A DNA stretch of 64,000 bases from Macrostomum lignano (GCA_002269645.1 NIVC01002284.1:62001-126000); one strand, 5' to 3'. Numbered from the stretch's first letter, positions 4,391-53,554 are shown. The notes: generated by a model from the sequence alone, not told the origin. Numbers and translations: made by a program.

Positions 4391-4617
4391 GACACACCCT
4401 CTATTCGCCACTTTTTCCCCATTTCCCTCTTCAACTCCCTCCAGCTCGGCGACCCTTTTATCCCCCCTCGGCACGGCCTGAAAGGCGGTGGCGGCTGCGG
4501 TCCGAATTCCGAGCGCGGCGAAAATTGAATTGAGGGGCTCAGCGGCCCGGCCTGCGGGCCCCGCTGAAATCCAATTGGCGCTCTGATATGAACTCAATTT
4601 GGCTGCAGCTTGCCGCC

Positions 4618-6921
<2,304 letters not shown>

Positions 6922-11190: not shown

Positions 11191-11197
11191 ACCGAGC

Positions 11198-17811: not shown

Positions 17812-17936
17812 TTTTGCTGATCAAAATGACAATGCCAATGCACTACTCTATTTACTATTTTTTAATTATTCACCTATGAAAATGCAATGCGCTGCTTTAT
17901 TATTTACTCATTAGTACATTAATACCCATGCTTTAA

Positions 17937-20132
17937 CCTTTTCAAGCCTGAATTCCTAAATAGAAAGCTCCGTTCCTGCCGGCATGGTCAGCAGAGCTGA
18001 CCATAGACTATTTCAAGTTTTCAGTGAACTGAATTGCACTGCCACTCCTGCCGATAAGCCAGCCATCGCTGGTCTAATCTAGGGTTGAAGGAGAATGTAC
18101 ATTTGGAATGGGTTGCACACACGCTTATCAAAACTGTACAAGACTGGCCATAGACAGTCCAGTTTTAGTATATTAAGGGCTGTGCCAAATTCTGTACAAT
18201 TCTATTCATGTAATTCAAATCAATCCAAATATGGATATTCTGTTGACTTCCGACTCCGAAAGTGACGCTGGAATAGCGGAGAACTCCGAGTCGTCTGAGC
18301 CGGTCACTATCAGCGAAGTAGAAGACGATTGGCAGTTTGTGGAGCCAGGCGAAGACATTGTTGAAGACGGCCCCAGTTTCACTGGAATTTCGGGTGTAAA
18401 CCCCAGCATTGTCCTTCCCGAAGACCGTGAAGACATCCAATATTTTCTACGACTGTTTCTAACCGATGAGCTGCTGGATAAGATCGTGGAGTGGACAAAC
18501 GCAAAAGCTTGGGCTGAGTATGAGCAGGCGACACATGATGGAGAAGATGTTTCGAGCTTGCTGAAGTCATGGAAGGACACAAACCGCAGTGAGATATCCA
18601 AGCTGTTGGGTATGTACCTGTTCATGGGCATCTCACGGAAGCCGGAACTGCATGATTACTGGAGCACCAGTGTCATTCACAGTACTCCGTTTTTTCAATC
18701 GCCCAATGGCTTGACCCGTGACCGATTCAAGCAGCTGCTGGCCTTCCTTCGTTTCTACGATGCACGAGCACCCGCCTCGAACGACCCACTGCACAAGATT
18801 CGGCCGCTGCTCCGTCTGGCTCAGCAGCTCTGCGCGAACGTGTACCAGCCGGAGCAGCAGGTCAGCGTCGACGAGTCCCTGATTCTGTACAAGGGGCGCC
18901 TTCAGTTTAGGCAGTACATCCCATCGAAGAGAGCCAGAGTTGGAATTAAAATGTACTGCGCCTGTGAGTCTGCATCTGGCTACCTGTATAACTTTCTAGT
19001 ACATTCGACTGCTGAAGAGAACTCTCATTTTGGCGACGACCTCGGTTGTGACCAGCTGTCTCTAAGCGAGAAAATCGTAGTGCACCTTTGCAAGGACCTG
19101 CTCGGTTTCGGCTATCACCTTTTCGTCGACAAGTGGTTTGCCTCAGTACGGCTTGCGACTTTTCTGTACGAACGCAGCACACTGCTGACAGCAACTGTTC
19201 GAGCCGACCGTGGAGTGCCGTTGGCATTGCGCAGTCAGCAGGTGCCGTTGAATGACGTAGTTTTCATGAGGAAGCTGCCAGTGCTGGCCATGAAAATCCT
19301 GGAGCGCAAGGAAAGCGGCTTGAAAACATTCTTCATGATCGACACCCACGGCTCAGCTCAGAAAGTAGCGACGAACCGAATTCGCAAGAATGGTGAAGCT
19401 GTGCAAGTGCAGAAAAGCGCCTCGAACCTGCTGTACAACCGCTGCATGGGAGGCGTTGACCGACTCGATGCCATGCTGAAACCGTACGACAGCTGCCGCA
19501 AAACCTACAAGTGGTTTCATAAGTTGGGGTTTCATCTCTGCCTGCTGCTTGTACACAATGCATGGGTTGTATACTCAAAGCACGGTGGCCGGCTGCAGTT
19601 CTTCAAATTCCTGGAGAGCTGTATCACCCTACTGGTTGACTCCACGGGACCAGGAAGACAGCGAACGGCAGCTAGGCAACCAGCGGCGGCCGCAGCTCAG
19701 CAGCACTTTCCATCAAAGCTGCCTCCGAGGGAATCGTGCCCGAGGCCGGTGAAGCGATGCCGCCTGTGCTACCGCAACGGCACTGCGAAGCGCACCGTGT
19801 TCTGCTGCAGTGCGTGTCCGAATCATGGATGAATGAATAGAATGGATTGCTATTCTGGCTCTGGCTATTTTCGTTTTTGACTCTTTTGCATCCGGTTCCC
19901 CCCCCCGTGCCTTTTCATTGGTTGATGATTGCCATAGACAATTTTCGGCCTTCGCCCCTTTCTTTCGATGGGTATTACTATTATTGTGCCATAGACATTT
20001 GTGTCCTAATTTGCATTAAAGTAAGTTTGGCATAGACAATCGGGCGTTTAATGTCATTAACTGCCCGCTAATTTGCATTAGTAAGTTTGACTCCTGCAAG
20101 CGGGCTTAAATGTAGTCTATGGCATTAAAAGG
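17937..20132 (+). mobile_element. piggyBac element nested in the hAT 3' region (right boundary uncertain)
   Basis: TTAA at 17933-17936 followed by CCTTTTCAAGCC. The candidate right end GGCATTAAAAGG (20121-20132) is a 10/12 inverted match but is followed by CAAG, not TTAA. Repeated (G)CCATAGAC subterminal motifs near both ends. Confidence 0.55.
18231..19832 (+). CDS. piggyBac transposase (PGBD4-like, DDE_Tnp_1_7), 533 aa
   Basis: DDD triad contexts VSVDESL, FVDKWF and MGGVDRLD; FRQYIPSKRAR.GIK motif; the Cys-rich tail CRLC..T..CCSAC ends early. Confidence 0.9.
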   Translation: MDILLTSDSESDAGIAENSESSEPVTISEVEDDWQFVEPGEDIVEDGPSFTGISGVNPSIVLPEDREDIQYFLRLFLTDELLDKIVEWTNAKAWAEYEQATHDGEDVSSLLKSWKDTNRSEISKLLGMYLFMGISRKPELHDYWSTSVIHSTPFFQSPNGLTRDRFKQLLAFLRFYDARAPASNDPLHKIRPLLRLAQQLCANVYQPEQQVSVDESLILYKGRLQFRQYIPSKRARVGIKMYCACESASGYLYNFLVHSTAEENSHFGDDLGCDQLSLSEKIVVHLCKDLLGFGYHLFVDKWFASVRLATFLYERSTLLTATVRADRGVPLALRSQQVPLNDVVFMRKLPVLAMKILERKESGLKTFFMIDTHGSAQKVATNRIRKNGEAVQVQKSASNLLYNRCMGGVDRLDAMLKPYDSCRKTYKWFHKLGFHLCLLLVHNAWVVYSKHGGRLQFFKFLESCITLLVDSTGPGRQRTAARQPAAAAAQQHFPSKLPPRESCPRPVKRCRLCYRNGTAKRTVFCCSACPNHG

Positions 20133-20745
20133 CAAGAATAAGTGCCCAGCGGGCACAAAGGTCATGGTACAATTTTCAATTATGCATCGATGACAATGCC
20201 AATGCGTTACTTTCTATTTATTCATTTTTCAACAGTAAACTACAGGTAACTTTTCCCTTGTCAATGCGATACTGCAACGCCATCTAATTTACTTGAAATT
20301 TCGAAATCTAGCTTGTTCAGCCTTCAACGAAAGACACAAGAATGCAGTCAAACATTAGCAGCTGTGTTTTAACTCTGAATATAGTCTTGATTAAGTTATT
20401 TGACTGCGCCAGAATCAATTTTTCTAAGAATTCAAGTAAACTACAGAGGCAAAATTAGAAATTTCATGGGGTATTACTCCTCCAAAATGGGGTACTACTC
20501 AGAGGCTTGATACCCCAATTCGGGTACTAATCAACAGCGAAAAAAAAACACTGGTTAAAAATAGCCGCATATCTGGCGACTGTCTATGGCCGGGAGGGCC
20601 TCGGGCCCGCGGTGTACAGTCAGCTCTAGTGAGCGATCTATTCCTAGGCAGCTAACACAGCTAGCAGGCGAGAGCAGTGGTTGGAAAGCACAGATTGGGA
20701 GCCCGAGCGGATTCTAAAGTGCACTCAGGCCAGCCAGTCGCCAGC

Positions 20746-22992
20746 ATGACCGGCAGCTCCAGCATCGTCACCCGCAAGCTCGTGCCGGCGCCGGCCGCGC
20801 CCGAGTCCCGCAACCTCAACAACCTGGCCAACGTGAACAACAGCTCGCACTACCCGCCGGTGCCCTACCCCCCACTGGCGGACTCCAGCGACTATGAGGT
20901 GCAGGTGCACGTGAACTTCCAGACCAGGGAGATGCGCCTGCTGCGCGTGCAGGGCGTCGCCGACACTGAGGGCGCCGACGTGCTGCTGTTCACCAGGCAG
21001 AAATGCCGCGACGACTGCGCGGACAGCGCCTGCCAGGCCTGTCGCACGCAGAAGCTGTACCAAGACCGCGCTGGCGACCCGCAGGGCTCCGTGCCCTTCA
21101 CGCCGCACCAGGAGTATCTGTACTGCCTGCGCTTCGACAAGCAGCCCATCACCGCGCTGCTGGCGCTGACGCCGCGAGAGCAAGACGTTGAAGTGCAGGA
21201 GAAGGGCGTCCTGGCCTACTGGTTCATGAAGTGGCTGGAACGGGCCAAGATCCTCAACCCCACTGGCGCGGTGGACGAGATCGGCAGCAGGCCGCTCGGC
21301 ATCAAGCCGGTCGCCTCCGCCCCGGCCGAGCCCGCGCCGGTGCAGCAGGCGGAGCCGCAACCGTCGCCACCGCCGCCGCCGCCCCCGCCAACATCGCTGC
21401 CGCCCCCACCGCCACCGCCGCCGCCGCCGTCGGAGGTCGAGGACCCGTACGACCAGCTTAAGGAGGAGGCACCGCAAGCGGAGGACCAGGCACCGCAAGC
21501 GGAGGACCAGGCACCGCAAGCAGAGTACCAGGCACCGCAAGCAGAGGACCAGGCACCCGCCACCGAGGAGTGCCCGCACAAGCAGACCAGCGACTACCTG
21601 CCCAACATGCAGGTGATCTACCAGGTAAAGAAGGACCAGCTGGGCGTCGTGCTGCCCAAGCCGGAGCAGCTCACCCGGCCCATCGACATCATTCTGATCT
21701 CGCACGAGGAGGGCAACAGCAAGGTGCAGTCGGTCACGATGGAGCCGGGCGCGGTGAAGAGCGGCAGCAACCTGGTGGCGCTGCGCAACATGGCGTACAC
21801 CCTGCGGGTGCAGCTGCACGGCCTGGGCCGCCCCGTGGACCTGCTGGACTTCATCACCGAGCAGAAGATTTTGCGCGTCCAGGAATCAAAGGATGCCCCC
21901 AAGCAGCTCAACTTCCTGATGGAGCGCCTCATCGAGCAGCGCGGCACCTTTGTGCTGCACATCACTTTCGACGAGAAAATCGTGGAGGTCGGCACGAAGC
22001 CTCTCGGCGAGTTCTACCTGGACGTCGATGTTGACGCGCACCGGATGCTAATCGGCACCATCAAGTCGCACGTGGCCAAGCACTACCGCGTGGAGAAGGT
22101 GCTCAAGGAGACCAACTCGAACATCCTGCTGGCCGACAAGCAGCTCGTGTTTGAGGGCGGCGTGGACCCCGACAGCCTGACAATCCGGGAGAGCATCCCC
22201 ATCGAGCGGATGTCCGACTATCTCATCACGGTGGTGGACCCCACCACCAAGCAGACGCTGCCCACCAGCGTGCTGGCCTTCCAGCGCAACGCCCTGTACG
22301 TCAAAGAGATCAAAAACAGCGACGTCCGCCTGCACGTGACGGTGCAGCGGCAGCCCACCATGGTGTCACAGTCCTCCAACGCCAACAATTGGCGCTCCGC
22401 CGCCTCGCCGCTGATTTCCGTGGACCGGCAGGACCCAAGCGACCCCAGTTCGGCCTTCCACTGCCCGTTCCGCAGCGGCTGGAACTGCTTCCGCATTCAC
22501 CACAGCGCCTGCGCCGAGGGCGACCGCCCGCTGCTGTCTTCTGTCGGCTCCGCCTCGCCCGCTGAGTCCGTCCGGGACGCCGAGACGGCCACCGCGGCCA
22601 CCGGCCAACTGGCGACGTCCTCAACGTCCGAGCCAGTCAGCGGGCGGCGCAGCTCGGCCGCCAAGTCCGCCAGCTTCAGCCTCGACGTCGACCTGCCGGC
22701 GCTGAAGGCCCGCCTGCTGCCCTGCGGCGAGACGGCCGCTGCCCAGCCTCCCAGATCGGCGCTCTTCATCATCTACGAGGAAAGCTACGACGGCAAACTG
22801 CGCTCGACGCCCTGCCACCTGGGCCAGGCCTTCAAGGTGAAGCACTGGTGCAAGTACACCGTCAAGTGCGTCGAGTCCGACTGCCTGAACCCTCTGCTGA
22901 CCTTCTGCATCACCGACAAGGAAGTCGCCGACGTCCGCGCCTGCAGCTCCTCCGTGCGGCTCAGCAAGAGGTTCGTCCACGAGGTCGTCTGA
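20746..22992 (+). CDS. Intronless hypothetical protein, 748 aa, family not recognised
   Basis: Strong GC3 codon bias like the CNOT1 exons; ATG in GCCAGCATGA context; non-repetitive apart from a poly-Pro/EDQAPQA linker. Confidence 0.8.
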   Translation: MTGSSSIVTRKLVPAPAAPESRNLNNLANVNNSSHYPPVPYPPLADSSDYEVQVHVNFQTREMRLLRVQGVADTEGADVLLFTRQKCRDDCADSACQACRTQKLYQDRAGDPQGSVPFTPHQEYLYCLRFDKQPITALLALTPREQDVEVQEKGVLAYWFMKWLERAKILNPTGAVDEIGSRPLGIKPVASAPAEPAPVQQAEPQPSPPPPPPPPTSLPPPPPPPPPPSEVEDPYDQLKEEAPQAEDQAPQAEDQAPQAEYQAPQAEDQAPATEECPHKQTSDYLPNMQVIYQVKKDQLGVVLPKPEQLTRPIDIILISHEEGNSKVQSVTMEPGAVKSGSNLVALRNMAYTLRVQLHGLGRPVDLLDFITEQKILRVQESKDAPKQLNFLMERLIEQRGTFVLHITFDEKIVEVGTKPLGEFYLDVDVDAHRMLIGTIKSHVAKHYRVEKVLKETNSNILLADKQLVFEGGVDPDSLTIRESIPIERMSDYLITVVDPTTKQTLPTSVLAFQRNALYVKEIKNSDVRLHVTVQRQPTMVSQSSNANNWRSAASPLISVDRQDPSDPSSAFHCPFRSGWNCFRIHHSACAEGDRPLLSSVGSASPAESVRDAETATAATGQLATSSTSEPVSGRRSSAAKSASFSLDVDLPALKARLLPCGETAAAQPPRSALFIIYEESYDGKLRSTPCHLGQAFKVKHWCKYTVKCVESDCLNPLLTFCITDKEVADVRACSSSVRLSKRFVHEVV

Positions 22993-32521: not shown

Positions 32522-33601
32522 CTGGTTAACCAGCATGGCTTCGAGGCCGAGCGCCACCTGTACAGGTGTCTGTTTTCCTCCATCGACTTCTCGGGCGCGC
32601 CGCACGACGCCAGAGGCTCGGTGAAGGACTACCACCAGACCCAGCTGCTCATCCAGGAGATGCACAGTCTGTTCGCCAAGCCCAACTTCGTCACCCTCAT
32701 CTGCTACGCCCTGGACCATCCGTTTGCCTCACAGAAGTCGCTGCGGCCGGGGTCCGGCCTGCTGCCGCAGGTCAGCCGCACCCTGAAGCTCAGCCGGGTG
32801 CAGGAGGTCACCCTCGGCCTCGCCCTGCTGTCCTCGCTGCGCCTTGAGACTCGCGAAGGCGCCCAGGCCTGGCTGCGCGCCAAGTTGCCCGACCTGCTCG
32901 CCACCTACGTGGACGCTGACGCTGGTGCAGGCGGGCACGACGGAGTTGGCGGAGTCGGCGGAGGCGGCGCCGGCGGCGGTGTGGCCGGCCTGCAGGACAT
33001 GAGCATCGAGATGGTGCACCTCATTCTCACCAAGCTGCGTGAGGAGCCGCACAGGTTCGGCGCCAGCAAGGACCTCATCGAGGCCTTCCTGCGCGTGCTG
33101 CGTAAGGATTTCCCCAAGCAGCGGGTGCCCGTAGTGCTGGCGCCGCTACTGTACGCAGAGACTGAGGATCTGCCAGTGTCGAAGGCCTTCCGCGAGCCGA
33201 CCAGCCTGCAGCAGATGGTGGTGAGCTCCAACTCGGCGCTGCAGTCCAGCCAGCAGGTTGACAGCAGCCTGGCCGAGCTGCTGGAGGAGCTGGGCTACGG
33301 CTGCACGGCTACACCGGAGGAGATGCGGCTGACCCTGGCCGAGTTCGGAGTGCGGGACATCACCCCCGCCGCCGTGGCCCGTTGCATCTCCATGTTCATG
33401 CGCACCTGCGAAGGCCACGTTGGCAACCAGATCGCCCTGCACGGCCCCGGCTCAGCCAGCTCCATCAGTTGGAAGCTGGACCAGCAGCAGCAGCAGCCGG
33501 ATACCTGGAATGTGGAAAATTTCCTCATGGCTGTGCGGGAGCTCAACTCCAGTCTGCAGCTTCGCAGCGTTGCATCCGAGCTGGACCATCCCGGCTTTGA
33601 G
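32522..33601 (+). CDS. CNOT1: CCR4-NOT subunit 1, first identified coding exon
   Basis: LVNQHGFEAERHLYRCLFSSIDFSG..KDYHQTQ..LSRVQEV..DFP..R.PVVLAPLLY..TWNVE..ELDHPGF matches the CNOT1 N-terminus; AG at 32520-32521, GT at 33602, phase 0. Confidence 0.95.
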
Positions 33602-33879
33602 GTGAGGCTCAGTCCCGCTCAGATATGATTTATGGCATTGGGGCTTTTGCTCTGATGCCCATGCCATTTTAGTAACTTTATCAAATAATTGGCTCTTTGA
33701 GTAAATTATTGTAAGAGATCGCCGACTAACGAGTAGCAAGAAAAGAACTTGATGTGTTCATAGGTGGGGGTTAGGTCAGCGGTTCCCCACTTCGTAGCCT
33801 GTCCGCTTGCCGCCTTGCGTCTTGACAAATTGATTCTTATTAGAAACTCGCTCATTGCCATTTGCCATTGACAACCCAG

Positions 33880-34347
33880 GTGAAGTCTAAGCGGGCATTC
33901 GAGCTGCTCCGCAAGTGCCTCAGCAATGGCGCCCAGGCCTCCAGCAGCGACCTGCCCATTGACGTCTTTTACCGAGACTGGAACTACGCGCAGGGCCAGC
34001 TGTCCTTCCTGCGCCACTGCATCATCCACTCGGACGTGCTCTGCCTGACCTTCTATCGCTACAGACAGACCGACATTGGCCGCCTCAAGCTGCCGCCAGA
34101 CTACGAGCTGCGCGGCAGCCCCACCCAGGTGTGGCGCAACCTGGACCTCATCGACGCCCTCATGAAGCTGTCTGAGCAGGGATTCTACACGGAGGTTCGC
34201 GAGCTGTTCGACTATCCGCTGAAAAGCTGCCCCGACCTGCTGATGCTGTCCTTGCTGCAGGCCCACGAGTCTATGGGGATATTGAAGCAGGAGCTGCTGC
34301 ACTGCCTTATCTGCATCCTGCTGACCAGCCACTCCAGTGCTTCTCTG
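33880..34347 (+). CDS. CNOT1: CNOT1 exon
   Basis: QGQLSFL..W.NLDLI..L..L..P..CPDLL.L.LLQ; AG/GT boundaries, phase 0/0. Confidence 0.93.
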
Positions 34348-34377
34348 GTGAATTGCTTTGCGAATTTTCTGCTTTTG

Positions 34378-35150
34378 TTCCAGATCCCAATTTCATTCTG
34401 CCGCCTTCCCAGATCCCCATCTCATCCTGCAACCTTCTGAGATCCCTATTGCATCCTGCCGCCTTCCCAGATCCCCATCTCATCCTGCAAACTTCCCAGA
34501 TCCCCATCTCATCCTGCCACCTTCCCAGATCCCCATCTCATCCTGCCACCTTCCCAGATCCCCATCTCATCCTGCCACCTTCCCAGATCCCCATCTCATC
34601 CTGCCACCTTCCCAGATCCCCATTGCGTCCTGCCACCTTCCCAGATCCCCATCTCATCCTGCCACCTTCCCAGATCCCCATTGCATCCTGCCACCTTCTG
34701 AGATCCCCATTGCATCCTGCCGCCTTCCCAGATCCCCATTGCATCCTGCCGCCTTCCCAGATCCCCATCTCATCCTGCAACCTTCCCAGATCCCCATCTC
34801 ATCCTGCCACCTTCCCAGATCCCCATCTCATCCTGCCACCTTCCCAGATCCCCATCTCATCCTGCCACCTTCCCAGATCCCCATCTCATCCTGCCACCTT
34901 CCCAGATCCCCATCTCATCCTGCCACCTTCCCAGATCCCCATCTCATCCTGCCACCTTCCCAGATCCCCATCTCATCCTGCCACCTTCCCAGATCCCCAT
35001 CTCATCCTGCCACCTTCCCAGATCCCCATCTCATCCTGCCACCTTCCCAGATCCCCATCTCATCCTGCCACCCCAGATCCCCATCTCATCCTGCCACCTT
35101 CCCAGATCCCCATCTCATCCTGCCACCCCAGATCCCCATCTCATCCTGTC
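34378..35150. repeat. 29-bp intronic minisatellite CCCAGATCCCCATCTCATCCTGCCACCTT
   Basis: Direct periodicity, within CNOT1 intron 34348-35269. Confidence 0.93.
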
Positions 35151-35269
35151 CCTCCCCTCTCGCCACCTCACTAAATTCTAATTTAATATTAAATTCCCAA
35201 ATCCCCACTTCCGCAATTTTATTCCACTCAAACGTCACACCGATTCTTTCTTTTCCCCTCGCCGCCCAG

Positions 35270-35942
35270 CTGCTAAACTACGCGTGGAATTTCGCCCAAG
35301 TGCGGCCGATCCTCCTGCACGCCCTGGTCGACTGGGTCTCGGAAGGAGAGGCCGTGGCGGGCGAGGGCTACCGGGCCAGCCGCGCCCTGGACCTGGTGCT
35401 GGAAATGCTGCCCAATGGGCCGGCCATGGACACCCTGGCCTGGGTGCTGAAGTCGCACAACCACCTGTTCAGCCTCAGCCTGGCCTGCCTGGCCGCCAAG
35501 CGGGACTACGTCAAGCTGGAGGCCTGGATAACCGAGCGGCTGGCCGAGTACGGCGACCAGTTCGCCCAGGCCGCGCTGAAGTTCCTGGCCGGCCGGGCCG
35601 GCCGCATGGTGGGCAAGGACGATCCGACAGACCAGATGCGGGCCGCTCAGGTGGACGCCGTCTCCGTCAAGACCATCCTGCAGTGCCTGGACCGGCGGCA
35701 GGACCGGCTGACCTTGGCGTCAGAGATTAAGACCGAGCTCGACCTGATGAAGATTAGCTTTAACAAATATGTCACTTTGGCAACCGGGCGCGACCCTCAA
35801 CAGCAGCAGCAGCCGCCAGTTCTGCCGCCTCAGCCGCCGCCGCAGCAACAGCAGCAGCCGCCGTTTGCGAAGGCGACCACGGCGGCCGCGGCCGCAGCGA
35901 TGATTGGAGCGCCGGTGCCCACCATCAGCTCGCAGCTGGCCG
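35270..35942 (+). CDS. CNOT1: CNOT1 exon
   Basis: LLNYAW..LA.LAAKRDYVKLE.W; AG/GT boundaries, phase 0/1. Confidence 0.92.
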
Positions 35943-36329
35943 GTGAGTTTCACTGCATTTGTTGAAGCATATAGCTGTTGTATCTTATTGTATCAATAAG
36001 TGGCTTTTTGTGTGTATCTTAACGCTTCAATGCGAGATGTAGAGGATGGGTGAGGGGGGTCGATATTAATCACAAGCCATGCAGCCGAAACCGCAGCTCA
36101 CAGGCATAGAAAAATATATAATGGAATTGGAGTCCCACAATTTTGCTGCAATCAGTTGAATGTACATCTGATGCGATTCGCTCACTGAATGTCGGTGATG
36201 TGAAAAAAATAAAAATGTTCAGCTGGCTATTTGCAGTAGCTTCACTGTTCGTTGTGATCCAAAACTGATGTATCGAAAAACTGGCAACGCAGTTTGCAAC
36301 TACTTTACTCTGGTCGCTCGATCCCACAG

Positions 36330-36984
36330 GCCTGCCTATGTCGCCAGCCTCCGCCATGCTGAAGCAGACTCTGGCCAGCCAACTGCCCGGCTTCGTGCCC
36401 CAGCAGCAGCAGCCCGGCCTGGCCACGCCCAAGCACAAGATCCCCATGTCCGCCATTCCCATCGGCTCGCCTGCTGGACTCGCCTTGCCGCCGCCGCAGG
36501 TGTCGCAGCAGCCGCCGCAGCCTCCCATGCCGATGTCGATGCACCATCACCCGCACCAGCAGCAGCCCATGCCGTCGATGCCGCCCGCTGGCAGATTCGG
36601 TCCCTCGCTGCCGCCTGAACTGACGGCGCCCAGCCCGCCCGAGCTGGACGAGCGCATCAACATGATGATGAAGAGCCTATTCAGCGGCACCATCACCTCC
36701 GACGAGGTGTTCAACATGCTGCGCGAGCCCAAGGAGAAGCCGCTGTGCAATTATTTCCTTCGCGTGCTGGTCGACGAGTTCCACCACATTCCCACCAGCT
36801 TCCCGCCAAAGCAGCGCGCCATCATGGCCGAGCTGTTCGGCCAGGTGATCGCCCTGGGGTTTCAGCTCACTTCTCACTCTGTGCTGGCCTTCTTCCTGCG
36901 CCTGCTCAGCCTGATTGTCACCCGGAATATCGAGACCGAGGCAGAGCAGACATTCTTCAACTTTGGCGTGGACATTCTGTTAAG
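36330..36984 (+). CDS. CNOT1: CNOT1 exon (Q/P-rich linker and start of the TTP-binding HEAT region)
   Basis: L.DEF...FP.K...I.A.LFG..I; AG/GT boundaries, phase 1/2. Confidence 0.88.
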
Positions 36985-37069
36985 GTGAGCGACCTTTCCA
37001 GCCTGAGTCTTGAAAGAGCCTTGAAAATTGCACCCAAGCACTCATGACATTCAAATCACCTCTTAGCTG

Positions 37070-38205
37070 TCATTGAAGATCGCCCTCTAGATGTCATTGA
37101 GGATGGCCCTCTAGATGCCATTGAGGATCGCCCTCTAGATGCCATTGAGGATCGCCCTCTAGATGCCATTGAGGATCGCCCTCTAGATGCCATTGAGGAT
37201 CGCCCTCTCGATGTTATTGAGGATCGCCCTCTAGATGCCATTGAGGATCGCCCTCTAGATGCCATTGAGGATCGCCCTCTAGATGCCATTGAGGATCGCC
37301 CTCTAGATGTTATTGAGGATCGCCCTCTAGATGCCATTGAGTATCGCCCTCTAGATGTCATTGAGGATCGCCCTCTAGATGTCATTGAGGATCGCCCTCT
37401 AAATGTTATTGAGGATGGCCCTCTAGATGCCATTGAGTATCGCCTTCTAGATGTTATTGAGGATGGTCCTCTAGGTGCCATTGAGGATCGCCCTCTAGAT
37501 GCCATTGAGGATCGCCCTCTCGATGTTATTGAGGATCGCCCTCTAGATGCCATTGAGTATCGCCCTCTAAATGTTATTGAGGATGGTCCTCTAGATGCCA
37601 TTGAGGATCGCCCTCTCGATGTTATTGAGGATCGCCCTCTAGATGTCATTGAGGATCGCCCTCTAGATGTTATTGAGAATGGTCCTCTAGGTGCCATTGA
37701 GGATCGCCCTCTAGATGCCATTGAGGATCGCCCTCTAGATGTCATTGAGGATCGCCCTCTAGATGCCATTGAGGATCGCCCTCTAGGTGCCATTGAGGAT
37801 CGCCCTCTAGATGCCATTGAGGATCGCCCTCTCGATGTTATTGAGGATCGCCCTCTAGATGTCATTGAGGATCGCCCTCTAGATGCCATTGAGGATCGCC
37901 CTCTAGATGCCATTGAGGATCGCCCTCTAGATGTTATTGAGGATCGCCCTCTAGATGCCATTGAGTATCGCCCTCTAGATGTCATTGAGGATCGCCCTCT
38001 AGATGTCATTGAGGATCGCCCTCTAAATGTTATTGAGGATGGCCCTCTAGATGCCATTGAGTATCGCCTTCTAGATGTTATTGAGGATCGCCCTCTCGAT
38101 GCCATTGAGGATCGCCCTCTCGATGTTATTGAGGATCGCCCTCTAGATGTCATTGAGGATCGCCCTCTAGATGTCATTGAGGATCGCCCTCTAAATGTCA
38201 TTGAG
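37070..38205. repeat. 24-bp intronic minisatellite GAGGATCGCCCTCTAGATGCCATT
   Basis: Direct periodicity, within CNOT1 intron 36985-38247. Confidence 0.95.
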
Positions 38206-38247
38206 AATGGCCTTGGCATCTCGAATTGCAACTCTGGCTGCCCGCAG

Positions 38248-41100
38248 GTGCAAGAGTAGCCTGGTGAACTATCGCCAGGTGGCGGCCCACCTGCTGGCCA
38301 GCAACAACTTCGCCAAGTTCCCCAAGGACCTGCAGATCGGCATCCAGCTGGCCGCCAGGTCCCAGCAGAGCGGCGATCCCGACTCGCAGATTCGCCGAGC
38401 CGGCGAAGGCGAAATCAACGAAGAGGCGGCCGTCCCGCCGGAGGGCGTACAGGACGCGGTGTTCTTCATCTTCAACAACCTGAGCAAGATAAACATGAGC
38501 ACCAAGTCGGAAGAGCTGCGCAGAGCCGTCCCGGACGAGTTCATGCCCTGGCTCGGCCAGTACCTGGTGATGAAGCGAGTCACCACCGAGCCAAACTTCC
38601 ATCAGCTGTTCGTAGACCTGATGGACGCGCTGAATGTGCCCCGCCTGCGCGAGATCGTCCTGCAGCAGACCTTCCGCAGCATCCGCGCCCTGCTGCAGAA
38701 CATGCGCCCGGACCTCAACGACTACAACGATCGCTCGCTGCTGAAAAACATCGGGCACTTTCTGGGCCTGCTCACCCTAGCAAAGAACCGGCCAATCCTG
38801 TTTGACGACATGGACCTGAAGGGCCTGCTGTTGGAGGCCTATTGCAAGGGCCAGGTAGAGATGCACTACGCCGTGCCGTTCGTAGCCCGCACTCTGGAGG
38901 CCTGCTCCCTGAGCCCCGTGTTCCGGCCGCCCAGCCCCTGGACCATGGGCATCGTCCGTGTGCTCAAGGAGCTGCACATGGACAAGGCGGTGAAGAACTC
39001 GCTCAAATTCGAAGTGGAAATCCTGTGCAAGAAGCTGGAAATCAACTTTGACCAGCTTGATCCCGCCTACTACTTGCGCGATAGCGACCGAATCCGCCAG
39101 ATCGAAGTGGAGAACTGCCTTATCCGGGGCTCCGCTGCCGGCGCCCGCGGCTCTGCAGCCGCACCGTCCACCGCCGCTGAGCACGAGCAGCAGCTGCCGC
39201 CCAGGATGACCGCCCCAGCCGAGGAGTTCGAGCCGCAGCAGCCGCTGCCGCCGCCGTCCCAGCAGCAGCTGCCGCCTCAGATGCACCTCGACCCGTCAGC
39301 GTTGCAGCTCATGCAGCAGCAGGGCGGCATGAACCCGCCGCTGCCGAGGTTCAAGTGGACCGACATCGAAACCAGTCGACCGCTAAGCGCCTTCTTCAAC
39401 GTGAATCTCGGCCTCCCGCTGCTTCAGGCCAGCCCAGGCCTGGCCAGCGGCATCCGACAGACCCTGGAGCTCACAGTCGGCGAGCTGATGGAGCCTGTGG
39501 CTCAGCGCTGCGTTCGGATCGTCCTCGGCACCGTGGAGGGCGTCGTGCGCAAAGACTTTGCCCTGGACGACGACGAAAGCCACCTTAGGTCGGCGGCGCA
39601 CAACATGACCCGCTGCCTGACTGCCGGCATGGCCCTCATCACCTGCCGAGAGGCGCTGAGCGTCAACATGGAGACCAAGCTCAAGCAGCAGTTCATGCAG
39701 GGCCTTAGCTCTCCCACCGCCCATCAGCGCGAGTTGATCGAGGACGCCGCCCGCGTCATCGCCCAGGACAACTTCGAGCTGGGCACGGCCTACATACAGA
39801 AGGTGTGCGTTGAGAAGGCCCTGGTGCAGGTGGACGTGACCCTGGAGACCGAGTACCGGCTGCGCATCCACGCCCGGCAGGAGGGCAGGCGGTACTTCGA
39901 CCAGCAGCAGCTGAGCTACCAGAACGAGTTCATGCCGCCCCTGCTGCGCAAGGCCGTGGGGCCACCACCGCTCAACAGCCTGGCCGTGTACTCCGAGTAC
40001 GCCAACTGCGTTCCCGGCTTCGCCAGTGACGCTCCGCCCGCCGTTCCTCCGCCCATGCCGGCCATGGCCGCCGCCCAGCCTTCGCAGCCGCCTCAGCAGC
40101 CACCTCCGCAGGCGTCGCAGGTGGCCGCACCGGCGCAGCCGCAGCACCGCAACGAGGTTGCCCAGCTGTTCGACACCATCGTGGCCGAGGTTGAACGGCA
40201 GTCGCAGTACATCGCCAACTCGTCCAGCCTGGCTACGCCAACTTCAACAGCCGCGGCCGGTGCCGGCATCGGGGACAGCGCCCAGCTGGTGCAGCGCCTC
40301 CGCGTGCTGGTCGAGCGGGCCAAGCGTGCCAAGTCGTCCGCCAACGACGCTTACGCTAGCAAAGTGGTGGAGGCGGCCGTCCAGTCGCTGTTCCAGACGT
40401 TCCGGCGCCACCCAATGCAGGCGCAATTCCCCCAGGAGGTGCTGGAGCGCTACAAGGAGGCGCACACTGTGGTGCTCAGGCTGATGTACCAGCCCAAGCT
40501 CAGCGGCCTGGGCTACTCCAGCTGCATGAGTCACGTGGTGACGCAGATCTGGACGGACATGCCGGAGCCGCAGAAGTGGAATAGCGACGCCTTCATCGAG
40601 CTACTAAAGATTCACATCGTCAGTCTGCAGGCTGTGGACTCGCACCTGGCCAAGCAGATCCGGCAGAGCAACCTGCGAGCCCTGCGGTTTGTCATGGACC
40701 TGTTCCACGCGCTGGTGCTCAACGACAGCCGGGAGCAGACTGTGCTCAACGAGTGCGACCTCACCGGCACCATCGCGGTGATCGCCCATCTGATTGAGAA
40801 GTCTCCGCCAGATCACGTGCCCAGGGAGTACGTCCAGGTCTACCACCAGGTGCGCGGCCTGCTGGACTTTGGCCTGCTGGAGGCCCACCAGCAGCCCGCC
40901 ACCACCTATCTGTACAGCGGCTGCTCCCAGGCCAGGGAGTTCGACGATCCACACTGGCTGCAGGAGGCCAGCGAGAACCTCATGAAGAAGTGGTACACCA
41001 TGTACAGCACCCAGCGGGTGGTGGACCAGCGCGGGTTCAACACCTTCGTGAAGGATATGACGACGTTTGGAATACTAAAGACCGACGATATCATTACTAG
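38248..41100 (+). CDS. CNOT1: CNOT1 large exon (CAF1-binding MIF4G domain, DUF3819, start of the NOT1 C-terminal domain)
   Basis: PPEGVQDAVFFIFNNLS, YLVMKRVTTEPNFH, DRSLLKNIGHFLG.LTLAKNRPI, LKFEVEILCK, RKDFALD.DE, ALITCREAL, GILKTDDIITR; AG/GT boundaries, phase 2/2. Confidence 0.97.
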
Positions 41101-41136
41101 GTAAATCTGTGGCTTTATAATATGTACTCTTAAATA

Positions 41137-41545
41137 ATCTGAGATTCAGGATCTCATCTGCCCCATAGTCGCACCTGAGATTCAGATCTGCCCCCATAAT
41201 CTGCATCTGAGATTCAGGATCTCATGTCTGCCACATAATCTGCATCTGAGATTCAGGATCTCATGTCTGCCACATTATCTGCATCTGAGATTCAGGATCT
41301 CATGTCTGCCCCATAATCTGCATCTGAGATTCAGAATCTCATGTCTGCCCCATAATCTGCATCTGAGATTCAGGATCTCATGTCTGCCCCATAATCTGCA
41401 TCTGAGATTCAGGATCTCATGTCTGCCCCATCATCTGCATCTGAGATTCAGGATCTCATGTCTGCCACATCATCTGCATCTGAGATTCAGGATCTCATGT
41501 CTGCCACATAATCTGCATCTGAGATTCAGGATCTCATGTCTGTCC
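41137..41545. repeat. 39-bp intronic minisatellite CTGCATCTGAGATTCAGGATCTCATGTCTGCCCCATAAT
   Basis: Direct periodicity. Confidence 0.92.
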
Positions 41546-41672
41546 CGTAGTCTGCACTTGGGATACAAAACCATCAACTTCAAAGCGTTCCTCATTAGAC
41601 TGCCAAACTTAGACTTGCTTAATTCAGCCATATCCTCCCCGAATCACTGCTCCACCCCTCCCACCGCTGCAG

Positions 41673-42150
41673 GTTCTTCCGGCTGACCACCGACTACGTG
41701 ATGGAGCACTGCTTCCGCGCTCTGCTCAAGTCCGGTCAGGAGGTCCTTGGCAACCGGGTCAGCTGCTATCAGGAGCTGGACGCCTACATCCGCCTCATCG
41801 CCGTGATGGTGAAGCACAGCGGCGAGCATGGGGCCGCCGCAGACATAGAGAGACAGCGAGAGCGCGAGGGCAGCGCCAGCACGAAGATCAACCTGCTGAA
41901 CAAAATCCTCGGCATCATTTCCGGCACCCTGCTGCAGGAGCAGGACATCCGGTCTGACCGGTTCCACCCGATGCCCTTCCAGCGGATCTTCATCCTTCTG
42001 TTCAGCGAGCTGCTCTCCCCGGCCACCGCCGATGCTGACAGCCCGCAGATCAACACCCTGACCACCTTGACCGTCCCCATGCTGGCGGCCTTCGCCAATG
42101 CGCTGCACATCGTCAGGCCTGCCAAGGCGCCGTCCTTCACCTACAGCTGG
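41673..42150 (+). CDS. CNOT1: CNOT1 exon
   Basis: RFFRL..LDAYIRLIA.MVKHSG..KINLLNKILGII..F..PFQRIF..P.KAPSF.YSW; phase 2/0. Confidence 0.95.
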
Positions 42151-42214
42151 GTAAGGCGCTTGCTTTATGGCTTCTTCACTGACACCGGCCGTTTTGCGTT
42201 CTCTGGCCGCCGCC

Positions 42215-42500
42215 AGATCCTCAGTTGCTGGGCCACCGCCACCTCACTCCCAGATCCTCAGTTGCTGGGCCACCGCCACCTCACTCCCAGATCCTCAGTT
42301 GCTGGGCCACCGCCACCTCACTCCCAGATCCTCAGCTGCTAGGCCACGGCCACCTCACTCCCAGATCCTCAGCTGTTGGGCCACCGCCACCTCACTCCCA
42401 GATCCTCAGCTGTTGGGCCACCGCCACCTCACTCCCAGATCCTCAGTTGCTAAGCCATCGCCACTTCACTCCCAGATCCTCGCTGGGCCACTGCCCCCCC
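42215..42500. repeat. 37-bp intronic minisatellite CAGATCCTCAGTTGCTGGGCCACCGCCACCTCACTCC
   Basis: Direct periodicity. Confidence 0.9.
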
Positions 42501-42606
42501 CCCCCTCCCAGATCCCCTAATGACTTTGCCACCCTCTTGGGTCGCGTATCAGTTTCCCAGTGCCAGCACCGCATCCTCACCAGCGCCCCAACCTGCGCAC
42601 CCCCAG

Positions 42607-43409
42607 GTGGAGTGCATCTCGCACCGGTCCGTGCTGTCCAAGTACCTCGGCAACCAGGCGGCCTGGTCCATGTACGCCCAGCTGCTGGTGGACCTTCTGA
42701 AGTTTATCGCGCCATTCCTGGCCACCGCCAACTTCATCAAGACTGTGCACCTGCTGTACCGCGGCACCCTGCGCCTCATCCTGGTGCTGCTGCACGATTT
42801 CCCGGACTTCATCAGCGAGTATCACCATGCCCTGTGCGACGTGATCCCCGCCAACTGCATCCAGCTCCGCAACCTCGTCCTGTCCGCCTTTCCCAAGTTC
42901 GTGCAGCTGCTGGACCCCATCCAGAGCCCGGCCTCGCAGTGCTGCGCCCTGCCGGAGATGCAGCAGGAGCCGCGCGGCTCCTTCGCCGGCCTGGAGACCA
43001 ACATCCCCGCCAAGCTGCGCGAGGAGGTTGACGGCTTCCTGGCCACGCGGAAGCCGGTGCAGTTCCTCACGGACGTGCAAAGCCGCATCCGGGCTGACGA
43101 CGGCGAGGAGGGCCGGCGCTACCACGTCGAGCTCACCAACGCGCTGGTGCTGTACGTCGGCAGGCGGGCCGTCAAGCGGATCAACGAGAGCGGCAACTCG
43201 CTGCAGCCGTACAACATGACTCACTGCGTTGAGACCGAGACCCTGCAGGCTCTGGTCATGCTGTGCTGTACCGAGGGCCGCTACCTGCTGCTCAACGCCA
43301 TGGCCAATCAGCTGCGCTATCCGAACTCGCACACCTTCTACTTCAATCAGATCCTGTTGTTCTTCTTCCGCGAGAGCAACAACGAGCAGATTAAGGAGCA
43401 GATTACCAG
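42607..43409 (+). CDS. CNOT1: CNOT1 exon (NOT1 C-terminal domain)
   Basis: LYRGTLRLILVLLHDFPDF, CDVIPANCIQLRNLVLSAFP, EGRYLLLNAMANQLRYPNSHT, EQITR; phase 0/2. Confidence 0.97.
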
Positions 43410-43489
43410 GTGATTACATAACTTGATTAAAAACCCAAATGGTGTTCAGTTGATAAACTGTTTAATGGTTTCGTTTGCTAGCAGAACCA

Positions 43490-49325: not shown

Positions 49326-52300
49326 CATCAACAGGCTCTTGTTAAGCATGTTACGGCAAGTTGCTGTCCTGCTTCGAGTTCGCGGGGCGGCGTACACGCG
49401 CTAACTGACTTCTAGTGAGAGACTTGAATGTGTACTTTTGTGTGATGCGATGCACTTTACTGCTGCAGCCTTCTGCTGAGGCGCAGTGGCTGTTACGCAA
49501 CTGCTGAGCCGCGGAACCCAGCAAGCGACAGCCTCGCCGCGCTAGGTGGGGGGGGGGGGGTTCAGCTGTCGCTGAGTGTATGTGTAGGGTGCACCGGGCA
49601 GTGCAGGCACGCACGTACATGTAATTATGTTTAGCGGTAAGCGTTTCCTGAATTCTGAGTAGCGCAGCGCAGACCTTCGTACATTTTTATCCATTATTAT
49701 CTCTCCCCTGTCAGTGCTGTTCGTTATCCCATTTTCTTATCCAACAGGTCTTGTATAGGAGTTTCTTCCCTTAGTTTAGGGATCAGGACTTGTCTGCGCT
49801 GAGCCGAGACCCCCCACTTGGCTGTTCGCATGACTGCCGGAGACGCACCGCAGCGGCCGCGCCCGTTTGTCCCCCGCAATTCCCAAATGAAGTTATGCGG
49901 ATTTTCTTCGATGCGTCGCTTTTTTCCTCTTCCCCTTTCTTGGCGTCGAAATTATGGTTGTCGAGCTTCCAGCTACAGGGAGCAATCATAATTCGATTGA
50001 GCGCACAGACCCCAGTTTGTACAGTTGTCCTTTGGCAGTGACTATCTCATCTTGTTAGCTAATTTGCTTTGTAGGCGAGACTGTTTCAGGTGCTGCAGAA
50101 GGCGATCGCGCCGCGGAATGGACTCAGCCGCAGTGCAGGCACACATTTGAAAAGCCAGTTTGAAGTCACCACCAGTCAAGACAGAGTCAAGATATTCAAG
50201 GAATATTTTAGATTATGACTTTGCTATTTTATATTTTAACTCATAAACAAAATGGTTCGAGCGTCAGAAATAGATATTTTTGTTATAAATGGTGCGAAAT
50301 TAAAGCTAGCCGAGTACATCCCGTGGCTCTGTTCCAGCCAGGAGGCAAATCTCATCAGCTCCTGCAGATTCAACTTTAAGCGTCTTGGAAGTGGGATGGC
50401 GGTATCGCATACAAGACCAAAACAGTGACGTGCAGACTGGATTGGGGTTGGGGCAGGGAATGTACACGGATAGCTAATGTACAGAGCCGGGCTGGCCAGA
50501 GCCGGGTGAGTGGGTGGGCATGTCTACCCAAACAGCCAGGGGCAGAAAACATAAGAGTGGAGTTGGGGTGGCGGCATCACGTGACCCAGGCCCAGACAGA
50601 CGTGGACTCTAGGATGGTGGGTGGTTGTGAATCGCTGCTAAAGTGCAAGCGATTTCGTGAGCGTGCAGACAGTTGGTGCCTTGGTGAGTGGTCGCGTTAT
50701 CAGCTGTTTATCAGAGTATCTGTTTATCAGATCTGGCCATCAATCAAATCGCCAGATGTACATTAACTTTTAATGTGTGCATCTAAGGCTCGTTCATAAA
50801 AAAAGCCAACAAATCACAAAGTGCACATGATTCCCAGTTCGAACGGACCTTCAGTAGCGCAGGCGCATCTCGGCACAGGTTACACGCCTCAGACACCTTG
50901 ACATTTATTCATCATATTAACATCTACTGAGTGACTGAGTCCCATGTTCCCTCAAAATGTAATGCAACTTTTGTAATCCGCCCGAAGGAAGTATACGTTT
51001 ACGAGTAACTAATCTGGAGCATTTAACTCATCTCAATCCTTAGAACAGTGTATTACTGGTTTTGTCATAATAAATACATGTAGCTCCGACTCATTTGTTC
51101 CCTTCTCTTGAGTTTTTCCCATCGTTGCCCAATTACAAAGCAATTATGAATTAATTTGAATTCCAAGAAGAAAAACGGCTCTGCACGTTATGTGCTTTTG
51201 ATAAATTAATTTCTCTCATACCTTTGCTTGTCATTAACAGCACGGCGCAATCTCCTTACTCTTTCTAATTGATCAGTGCAGTCAGGCAGGTTGAATTTGG
51301 GTGGCTGCATCGCTTCGTCTCCACCCACCGCCAACCTCGGCCTCCGCAGCGCCATCACTGGCGGAGAGGAGGCTGGATGGCCGCGCCCGCCCCAGCCTCC
51401 TGCAGCGGCCTCCTATATTTTTACTCGGTAAAAGTCGGCCGTCAGGAAAGTCGCCGATAAAGGAAGGAAGCGCACTCAGCCCTCAACCTCCGCCAGCGAC
51501 TGCAGCAGCCCGACTCCGCCAGCCTTGAATAAAGTCAGGTGAGAAAGTTGCTTCAGCAGGCCAGAGAGACCCAGAGAGTATCAGAGAGCGGCTGCACTCG
51601 CTCAATACTGAGTGAGCAGACTGCGGGCAGCTGCAACTGACTTTAGACACTAATTGAGAACAATTAATAAGGGCCAGGGAGTCGATATGCACAGAGGTCT
51701 CCTTGCCAGTCGATATGCAAATGAAAAGCCTGGCTGGGCGGAAAGTCGCCTTCAATGCCCAGCAACACAGCGAAGGTCTCCGATGGGATCTATAGATAGC
51801 TGTGGGCCGTGTCCGCGCCCTCTGTTGCCGCCATGATGAGCAGCTCTCCCGATCCGCAATCAGCTTGTCCTGCAGCCAACATCGTCTCCGTTTATCCCCT
51901 GCAATCGATACCTCAGTAATCTCTTGTCTGCCGCGGATCTTTATGGCCCCGGGATATCAGCCGCGGTCTCGAACCCGACTCAAATGAAAAATTCATCTGC
52001 AAAGCAGCCGCTTGCGCAGAATTTTTGCTGAATTCTGACTTGAACTGCAGGCATGTCCGCTTGCGGTCTCGCGTGCGCTATGGTTGCTTATAATGAGGCT
52101 GAATAATTAATTAGCCCCAACCAGGGCTGCTGCATCCTCTCAATGAGTCCGCGCAGTTTTCTAAGCCTCTTGAAGTTTTTTCTTGGCTAACTTTTTTTGA
52201 GGCGCATCTTAGCGATTGGAAACAATTAGTGATCCAATTTTGCTGCCATGAATTCACGTGAAACTGTATTTTGTCCCTGTCTAACTGACAAAAACCTCCT

Positions 52301-52351
52301 TGCAGAACCCAAGACGAAAATAGACTGTCTATCTACTGAAGCCACGCTGAA

Positions 52352-52432
52352 ATGCGCCACAATTCCACCTGCCGGATTGGCCTGGCCTGCCTGATGGCCT
52401 TTCTGCTCTGTGCTGGAGTGACCCACTGCGAG
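52352..52432 (+). CDS. Neuropeptide precursor exon 1 (signal peptide [27 protein letters not shown])
   Basis: Basic n-region, hydrophobic core and small residues at -3/-1; donor GAG|GTGCGT at 52432/52433, phase 0. Confidence 0.8.
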
Positions 52433-52436
52433 GTGC

Positions 52437-52812
52437 GTGACGGGCTGGGTGACGGGCTGGGTGACGGGCAGGGTGACTGGCTGGGTGACGGGCTGGGTGA
52501 CGGGCTGGGTGACAGGCTGGGTGACGGGCTGGGTGACGGGCTGGGTGACGGGCTGGGTGACGGGCTGGGTGACAGGCTGGGTGACGGGCTGGGTGACGGG
52601 CTGGGTGACGGGCTGGGTGACAGGCTGGGTGACGGGCTGGGTGACGGGCTGGGTGACAGGCTGGGTGACGGGCTGGGTGACGGGCTGGGTGACGGGCTGG
52701 GTGACGGGCTGGGTGACGGGCAGGGTGACTGGCTGGGTGACGGGCTGGGTGACGGGCTGGGTGACGGGCTGGGTGACGGGCTGGGTGATGGGCTGAGTGA
52801 CGGGCTGGGTGA
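52437..52812. repeat. 12-bp G-rich intronic array (GGGCTGGGTGAC)n
   Basis: Starts immediately after the donor site. Confidence 0.93.
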
Positions 52813-53107
52813 GAAGCTGGATAAACTTGACCTCAAAGAAAACTCGCCTGTGAGCAAGGCATCCGGCCTCTGTGCAATGCCAGCAAGCGTCTGAGTTCTG
52901 TTTCAGTCAAGCAGTCACAAAGTCGGCGAAATGAGTAAATTGGGGATGCCGACAGTTAAATGACAGCAATTTGCATTTCCAACAGGAGAATTCCATTAAG
53001 GCTCTGGAAGCAACGTTTTAGGGAGTTTAGCGATCTGAAAGTGACTTCAAAGTGCAGATTTGGAGATTTAGTTTCGCTACAATTGATCTTAAAACTGATC
53101 TCTCCAG

Positions 53108-53554
53108 ATGCCCGACTCCGAAGCCATGGAAGATGACAGTCGGGATGAAGAGAAGAGGTTCGACCCGCTGATGATGAAGAAGTTCGACCCGCTGATGATG
53201 AAGAAGTTCGACCCGCTGATGATGAAGAAGTTCGACCCGCTGATGATGAAGAAGTTCGACCCGCTGATGATGAAGAAGTTCGACCCGCTGATGATGAAGA
53301 AGTTCGACCCGCTGATGATGAAGAAGTTCGACCCGCTGATGATGAAGAAGTTCGACCCGCTGATGATGAAGAAGTTCGACCCGCTGATGATGAAGAAGTT
53401 CGACCCGCTGATGATGAAGAAGTTCGACCCGCTGATGATGAAGAAGTTCGACCCGCTGATGATGAAGAGGTTCGACCCGCTGATGATGAAGAAGTTCGAC
53501 CCGCTGATGATGAAGCGCAGGTTTCTCCGCAAGCTTCACCGCCTGCACGAGTGA
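53108..53554 (+). CDS. Neuropeptide precursor exon 2: acidic spacer plus 15 x FDPLMM flanked by KK/KR
   Basis: Acceptor CTGATCTCTCCAG| at 53107/53108, phase 0. Translates MPDSEAMEDDSRDEE-KR-(FDPLMM-KK/KR)15-RFLRKLHRLHE*. Spliced precursor is 175 aa. Confidence 0.85.
   Translation: MPDSEAMEDDSRDEEKRFDPLMMKKFDPLMMKKFDPLMMKKFDPLMMKKFDPLMMKKFDPLMMKKFDPLMMKKFDPLMMKKFDPLMMKKFDPLMMKKFDPLMMKKFDPLMMKKFDPLMMKRFDPLMMKKFDPLMMKRRFLRKLHRLHE

Follow-up and report, generated by a model that had tools for sequence, protein, structure and literature searches.

In a genome of which about 15% consists of simple and tandem repeats (PMC5730564), how is a minisatellite to be told from a gene? The question is raised by positions 52,352 to 53,554 of a 64,000-nucleotide stretch of the flatworm Macrostomum lignano (GCA_002269645.1, NIVC01002284.1:62001-126000; hereafter the window), where fifteen near-identical 24-bp units lie among about 25 further tandem arrays detected by Tandem Repeats Finder (TRF). 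A first-pass annotation, made from the sequence alone, had read this array as part of a neuropeptide precursor with copies of the hexapeptide FDPLMM between dibasic sites. The analysis described here makes it quite probable that the locus is a transcribed gene for a predicted 175-amino-acid (aa) secreted prohormone of neuropeptide type, which would belong to the flatworm FDP family typified by Smed-spp-15 and Sm-npp-26.

The array as a coding exon

When the window was read directly, the sequence of 52352-53554 agreed base for base with the earlier description. Twenty-seven codons run from the ATG at 52352 to a last base at 52432, at the donor GAG/GTGCGT. The acceptor tctctccag/ATG is a pyrimidine-rich tract with its AG ending at 53107, and exon 2 opens at 53108 with ATG CCC GAC. 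Phase-0 splicing across the GT..AG intron 52433-53107 gives a coding sequence of 528 nt, or 175 aa, with the stop at 53552-53554. The signal-peptide exon, the phase-0 junction 52432/53108, the acidic spacer and the 15 dibasic-flanked FDPLMM units of the first-pass annotation were in this way confirmed by sequence, translation and TRF, and the junction recurs in the database protein PAA57848.1. The features are given below; L001 is a second copy of the locus on NIVC01002440.1, and A0A1I8GQH5 is a UniProt entry from M. lignano.

51414..51422, plus strand: TATA-like motif TATATTTTT, from a reading of the sequence; identical in L001 and about 25-30 bp 5' of the putative first exon
51447..51538, plus strand: putative non-coding exon of the 5' untranslated region (5'UTR), 5' end uncertain, from the translation of A0A1I8GQH5; 3' donor CAG/GTGAGA
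51539..52341, plus strand: putative 5'UTR intron, GT..AG, 803 bp, with boundaries implied by A0A1I8GQH5
52342..52432, plus strand: signal-peptide exon, 10 nt of 5'UTR and 27 codons; GC content at third codon positions (GC3) 0.78; coding part 81/81 identical in L001
52433..53107, plus strand: phase-0 intron GTGCGT...tctctccAG, 675 bp; THCE/MPDSE junction found in PAA57848.1
52437..52812, plus strand: intronic 12-bp minisatellite GTGACGGGCTGG, 31 copies (TRF)
53108..53158, plus strand: acidic pro-region MPDSEAMEDDSRDEE and, after it, the first KR for cleavage; differs from L001 only by A33D
53159..53518, plus strand: fifteen 24-bp coding units, FDPLMM followed by KK (13) or KR (2) (TRF, translation)
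53519..53554, plus strand: C-terminal tail R-FLRKLHRLHE and TGA stop (53552-53554), from translation; tail identical in L001

The array itself was delimited by TRF at 53152-53515, with a period of 24, 15.2 copies and 99% matches. Thirteen of the 15 units are identical (TTCGACCCGCTGATGATGAAGAAG), one ends in AGG and the final one in CGC. All but one of the array's six frames are open, and many neighbouring arrays likewise yield long open reading frames (ORFs), so that an open frame by itself is weak evidence of coding. Codon usage is more telling. The exons of the CNOT1 gene in the same window, which show a strong codon preference with a GC3 of 0.87, were taken as the reference for a codon adaptation index (CAI). 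The frame that encodes FDPLMMKK has a CAI of 1.0, with each of its six degenerate residues specified by the top codon (TTC, GAC, CCG, CTG, AAG, AAG). The remaining open frames of the unit have values of 0.12-0.68, in the 24 other arrays of the window the best frames lie at 0.26-0.72, and of 20,000 random 24-mers just 15 (0.075%) attain 0.95 in any frame. A rough signal-peptide heuristic, applied to both strands of the window, passed six of about 1,900 ORFs beginning with ATG, and the ORF at 52352 was among them. Its leader has n-, h- and c-regions (MRHNSTCR ... THC) with small residues at -3/-1, and the exon as a whole specifies a 26-residue signal peptide and E.

The differences between units point in the same direction. 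Within the window, units depart from the common sequence only by AAG>AGG and, in the last one, by AAG>CGC, which bears out the earlier statement that unit variation keeps the dibasic site. The 16 units of L001 show three kinds of change and no other: GAC>GAT and CCG>CCA, both silent, and AAG>AGG (K>R). Of the 72 single-base changes that a unit can undergo, about 13 by our own count preserve both FDPLMM and the K/R pair. That at least three distinct events all fall in this tolerated class has a probability of roughly 0.006-0.03, which is suggestive but not decisive, because variant units may spread through duplication. A CAI of 1.0 in a single frame makes the array an outlier among the 25, and its variants are all silent or K/R; neither is what a non-coding minisatellite would display.

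A 12-bp array in the intron provides a contrast. It is in frame with exon 1, where it would encode DGLG repeats, yet it uses rare Gly codons and has a CAI of 0.28, and the 31 copies in the window correspond to about 2.5 in L001 (5089-5113). In its codon usage and its copy-number lability, this array acts as an unconstrained repeat. The two arrays lie 300 bp apart: between the two copies of the locus the intronic one has 31 versus about 2.5 copies and the coding one 15 versus 16 units. The FDPLMM array thus has the appearance of a coding minisatellite, in which the copy number shifts and the peptide sequence stays constant.

The acidic spacer (53108-53158) and the tail (53519-53551) were also seen, on reading the sequence without an alignment, to resemble decayed and partly frame-shifted 24-bp units; an example is GACAGTCGGGATGAAGAGAAGAGG against GACCCGCTGATGATGAAGAAG. 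The second forward open frame of the unit encodes the acidic RPADDEEV. This suggests that the unique parts of exon 2 were derived from the array.

The 175-aa protein was used in an exhaustive HMMER search of 1.84 billion representative sequences. The search gave 410 matches, most of them unrelated low-complexity repeat proteins. One match was PAA57848.1 (hypothetical protein BOX15_Mlig023240g1, M. lignano), a protein of 95 aa that is 98% identical to the query and has the same THCE/MPDSE junction and the same tail as the window protein. It is encoded at 5001-5872 of L001 in assembly Mlig_3_7. L001 is collinear with the window from 47.7 to 55.8 kb, with a substitution divergence of 1-2.6% in the flanks, and the unique coding bases of the two copies differ at one position in 174 (exon 1 81/81 identical; A33D in the spacer; tail identical). 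L001 and the window locus are therefore alleles, homeologues or assemblies of one gene.

The GenBank annotation of Mlig_3_7 was based on transcripts assembled both with the genome as guide (StringTie/TACO) and de novo, in which TransDecoder called the ORFs (PMC5730564). Because PAA57848.1 stems from this transcript-derived annotation, the 52432/53108 junction is supported by RNA. The L001 DNA carries 16 units and the PAA57848.1 product only 5, which means that the model must omit 264 nt of the array; this is read as a collapse of short-read transcripts over the repeat and, therefore, as an annotation artefact. What the database offers in place of a complementary DNA is thus the junction in a model derived from RNA-seq, with 16 units collapsed to 5. 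The earlier warning that repeat masking would hide the gene was partly borne out: the GenBank model keeps 5 of the 16 units of its locus, and another model, A0A1I8GQH5, stops after the signal-peptide exon.

A0A1I8GQH5 is a 60-aa protein from an older assembly that ends with the signal-peptide exon. Translation of 51447-51538 spliced to 52342-52429 reproduces it exactly, with a GT at 51539 and an AG at 52340-52341, and both junction sequences (51538/52342) are conserved in L001. The protein has no start methionine, and no ATG occurs in the 117 nt preceding 52352; we infer that it is a 5'-partial ORF through a non-coding first exon. The beginning of the first coding exon is accordingly most likely at 52342, just after a splice acceptor, and not at the ATG at 52352; the gene probably consists of two coding exons and three exons in total. 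The TATA-like TATATTTTT at 51414..51422 may be an element of its promoter.

FDP peptides in flatworms and the proposed processing

Criteria for flatworm prohormones were given by Collins et al. 2010 (PMC2953531): a signal sequence, flanking basic sites and a length of less than 200 aa, the last together with a lack of similarity to genes that bear another annotation. In the window protein, a signal sequence was recognized by the rough heuristic; KR stands before unit 1, KK or KR between the units and KRR after the last; and the length is 175 aa, with no Pfam family above the cut-off. With all three present, the prohormone architecture proposed at first pass was upheld, and it is strengthened by the SPP-15/NPP-26 family. 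The Pfam entries 'Cornifin' (for the precursor) and 'TrAA12' (for a read-through ORF) were rejected, as both scored under the cut-off and reflect repeat composition.

Among the HMMER matches, the precursor-like relatives are all uncharacterised or named 'Secreted'. Two of them are from M. lignano: A0A1I8HH48, with repeats of the form ...ERR-FDPLIM-RKR-FDPLIM..., and A0A1I8FZM5, named 'Secreted protein', with ...KR-FDPLYGM-KR-FDPLYGM.... Both carry the FDPL core in multiple copies after KR or RKR, and A0A1I8FZM5 has an N-terminal hydrophobic leader. They differ from the window protein in their tails (IM and YGM), their basic linkers and their N-terminal regions, and both are predictions from an older assembly. 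The FDPL core is constant among the three precursors and the rest is divergent, which is the pattern expected of released ligands.

FDP peptides are already known from planarians and schistosomes, which removes the novelty that the first-pass annotation had implied for this type of peptide. The precursor Smed-spp-15 of Schmidtea mediterranea (GenBank BK007013) consists of a signal peptide followed by eight copies of KR-FDPIQF-G and one KR-FDPIMF-G (PMC2953531); in a machine-read version of the prohormone sequence, the peptide appears as FDPPIQF, while the main text and the mass-spectrometry tables give FDPIQF (PMC2953531). Mass spectrometry confirmed both peptides, FDPIQF-amide and FDPIMF-amide, and expression of the gene was seen in the cephalic ganglia and ventral nerve cords as well as in sub-epidermal cells and the pharynx (PMC2953531). 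In this precursor, as in the window protein, fewer than 200 residues comprise a signal peptide, a pro-region and, directly after dibasic sites, tandem copies of a hexapeptide that starts with FDP. FDPIMF and FDPLMM are identical at four of six positions, with I/L and F/M at the others. The differences are that the planarian units carry a terminal Gly and are amidated, whereas those of M. lignano have no Gly; that the planarian sites are KR and 13 of the 15 M. lignano sites are KK; and that Smed-spp-15 has Ile at position 4, a C-terminal Phe and 9 copies, against Leu, Met and 15-16 copies. The N-terminal regions of the two precursors are unrelated beyond the leader, so homology is not provable. 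A BLASTP comparison of the two proteins gave E = 3e-10, a value from a single comparison that is inflated by the repeats.

The authors of the planarian study aligned spp-15 to the schistosome npp-26, with the peptides NFDPILF, SYFDPILF, SYFDPIIY and EHFDPIIY (PMC2953531). NFDPILF-OH and SYFDPILF-OH of Sm-npp-26 were later found, non-amidated, by liquid chromatography-tandem mass spectrometry (PMC9495596). The Schistosoma precursors (Sm-npp-26/Sj-npp-26, Smp_071050) resemble that of M. lignano in having several KR-flanked FDPI-x-hydrophobic peptides with a free C-terminus. Unlike it, they have one or two extra N-terminal residues (SY-, N-, EH-), heterogeneous peptides ending in F or Y in about five copies, and a precursor that is not a homogenised DNA tandem array. 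Against the core of the known members, F-D-P-[I]-x-[F/Y], the M. lignano peptide has the same F-D-P, L at position 4 and M as the last residue. The chance of finding FDP[IL] at a peptide N-terminus, relative to a few hundred flatworm peptides, was put at 0.003-0.01, a rough estimate made with no formal test.

Outside Macrostomum, the only precursor-like match in the 1.84 billion representatives was CAI5456649.1 of the nematode Caenorhabditis angaria. It has a signal peptide and about 12 peptides of the form KR/KK-FDP-x (FDPY, FDPLS, FDPMFN and others). It differs in its heterogeneous peptide tails, is uncharacterised and ends in ...GFGRK. It resembles a precursor of the NLP type, and its FDP start may well be convergent, the other possibility being a deeper family.

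The first-pass annotation had likened the peptide to the orcokinin and pedal-peptide type, and this comparison did not hold. Those peptides are also multi-copy and non-amidated, lie between dibasic sites and have an acidic residue after an N-terminal aromatic one. Orcokinins and pedal peptides, however, run to about 13-15 residues and have a conserved motif at either end, NFDEIDR-like at the N-terminus and of GF type at the C-terminus. FDPLMM has six residues and no GFG-type C-terminus, only 'FD' is shared, and no Pfam profile matched; membership was rejected.

The processing of the precursor can be proposed as follows. The N-terminal signal peptide would lead the protein into the endoplasmic reticulum and be split off at some point within residues 20 to 26. 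Once in the regulated secretory pathway, the protein would be cut after KR, KK and KRR by a PC2-type convertase, after which a carboxypeptidase would trim the basic residues. The expected products are 15 copies of FDPLMM per precursor, the acidic pro-peptide and FLRKLHRLHE. Since no Gly precedes the basic pair, as translation showed in agreement with the earlier reading, FDPLMM would have a free carboxyl end without amidation (computed [M+H]+ 753.33). A PC2 homologue of M. lignano is expressed in the nervous system and its knock-down by RNA interference (RNAi) is lethal (PMC4490696), and the planarian mass-spectrometry tables show cuts after KK (KK.FRGLLa, KK.pQQFF...) (PMC2953531). By analogy with planarian spp-15, FDPLMM would be released from neurons and act on a receptor. 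The resemblance to the SPP-15/NPP-26 prohormones supports the reading of the FDPLMM precursor as that of a neuropeptide.

Alternative explanations

Several observations weigh against a neuropeptide prohormone of the FDP family. KK is the least favoured dibasic site for convertases and accounts for 13 of the 15 internal sites, so that processing may be partial. The likeness to SPP-15/NPP-26 consists of the four-residue core FDP[IL] and the architecture, with an E-value inflated by repeats, which leaves homology and convergence indistinguishable; moreover, the C-terminal residue is Met, where the known members have Phe or Tyr. The protein and metagenome searches turned up no orthologue from a species other than M. 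lignano. With 1-2.6% divergence in the flanks and one difference in 174 unique coding bases, the window and L001 are too close for purifying selection on the unique coding parts to show. The searchable literature yielded nothing for FDPLMM, RFDPL-neuropeptide or Mlig023240, the supplements of three papers on M. lignano do not contain the gene ID Mlig023240, and no M. lignano peptidome or expression table with the gene was found in the literature and supplements. Two other searches were also negative: a word-indexed protein search with the 175-aa protein gave no match, not even PAA57848.1, and metagenome contigs scanned with two degenerate DNA patterns contained no match.

The alternative that survives best, although we regard it as improbable, is that of a real gene with a non-neuronal secreted product. 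This could be a peptide of a gland (prostate/seminal fluid, pharyngeal, adhesive or epidermal) with a pheromone-like, antimicrobial or seminal role, or else an intact repetitive protein, rich in Met and Lys, that is secreted as such. The many secreted gland products specific to the M. lignano lineage speak for this explanation, as do the weak cleavage of KK sites by convertases and the additional expression of Smed-spp-15 itself in sub-epidermal cells and pharynx. On the other hand, the precursor has the features by which flatworm prohormones are recognized, and its peptide core matches that of a family which shows expression in the central nervous system and has been confirmed by mass spectrometry. 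Furthermore, the three paralogous precursors keep FDPL and otherwise differ, as would a released ligand and not a structural repeat.

A second alternative concerns the intron. Its retention would give an ORF of 180 aa at 52352-52894, consisting of the signal peptide and DGLG repeats; the use of a later donor, CCT/GTGAGC near 52849, would place DGLG before FDPLMM. The 12-bp period is divisible by 3 and the array reads open in the frame of exon 1; the GTGAGC donor 3' of the array, noted by eye and not by script, is compatible in phase. The DGLG frame, however, relies on the rare Gly codons GGG and GGT (hence the CAI of 0.28), its copy number of 31 against about 2.5 in L001 is what an unconstrained intronic array would show, and PAA57848.1 carries the 52432/53108 junction. 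Intron retention is for these reasons considered very unlikely.

Least credible of all is an ordinary non-coding minisatellite with a coincidental ORF, dibasic pattern and leader, and with gene models that are ORF-calling artefacts of spurious transcripts: the repeat content of the genome, the five open frames, the long ORFs in many arrays of the window and the lack of any AATAAA in the window sequence within 1.2 kb 3' of the stop codon would suit it, but it is largely refuted by a maximal CAI precisely in the frame continuous with the signal peptide, by variants in two copies that are only silent or K/R, by canonical in-phase splice sites whose junction occurs in an RNA-derived model, and by a peptide that fits a known flatworm family.

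The surrounding window and the meaning of the locus

Upstream of the prohormone gene lies the gene for CNOT1 (CCR4-NOT subunit 1; 32621-43413, plus strand), with unusually long exons that include one ORF of 969 aa and only about 38% identity to vertebrate CNOT1. The GC3 of its exons compares with a GC content of the window near 50%. Arrays with periods of 29, 24, 39 and 37 bp (34380-35148, 37059-38212, 41187-41556 and 42213-42515, respectively) are found between or at the edges of the CNOT1 ORF pieces and look mainly intronic.

Several transposase genes are also present. On the minus strand, in 8565-14215, two adjacent intact ORFs (884 aa and 932 aa) encode transposases of the P-element/THAP9-like kind, in which TNP-like RNase H, GTP-binding and THAP domains are present. 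As two tandem full-length copies, they could be active elements or domesticated genes. On the plus strand, the stretch 15449-19832 contains first a hAT-like element split into three ORFs, with a hAT dimerisation domain at 16885-17811, and then an intact ORF of 533 aa at 18231-19832 for a piggyBac-type transposase (DDE_Tnp_1_7, E = 5e-71). Exact-identity database look-ups of the piggyBac ORF and of a 148-aa ORF returned no record. Another ORF of 771 aa (20677-22992, plus strand) matches nothing in Pfam; within it are a poly-Pro/CCG run at 21361-21429 and an in-frame 21-bp repeat at 21467-21557 with APQAEDQ-like units, and the ORF may be a second case of a tandem repeat within coding sequence. 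Simple arrays found by TRF occupy much of 411-6921: a 14-bp repeat in 165 copies (411-2702), a different 14-bp repeat in 60 copies (3170-4003) and TCTG in about 576 copies (4618-6921). Rfam and tRNA scans of the window gave no match.

As for the prohormone locus, it was already known as a hypothetical protein in GenBank, and the peptide family was known from other flatworms. What is new is the true structure of 15 or 16 copies, the proposed assignment to SPP-15/NPP-26, the presence of at least three types of paralogue and the occurrence of a coding array amid non-coding ones. In a genome so rich in tandem repeats, one array proves here to be a protein-coding exon, and standard pipelines mishandle it. 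The result is a useful correction of the annotation and a modest evolutionary data point, and it establishes no new principle.

A more far-reaching proposal is offered tentatively, as its parts are unlikely to hold all together: that the FDPL peptides (FDPLMM, FDPLIM, FDPLYGM) are a Macrostomum-specific expansion encoded by homogenised coding minisatellites and acting on a receptor shared across Platyhelminthes. If this is true, the copy number of the array varies between alleles or homeologues (15 versus 16), and peptide dosage would evolve via replication slippage or unequal exchange. Met-terminated, non-amidated ligands would then share a receptor with planarian SPP-15 and schistosome NPP-26, and M. 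lignano, with its transgenesis and RNAi, would be a tractable model for a peptide system of parasitic flatworms.

The assignment itself would extend the FDP-prohormone family, hitherto found in planarians and schistosomes, to the Macrostomorpha, an early-branching lineage of flatworms. Since M. lignano is the one flatworm in which transgenesis is routine, studies of the receptors and functions of peptides shared with parasites would become more practical.

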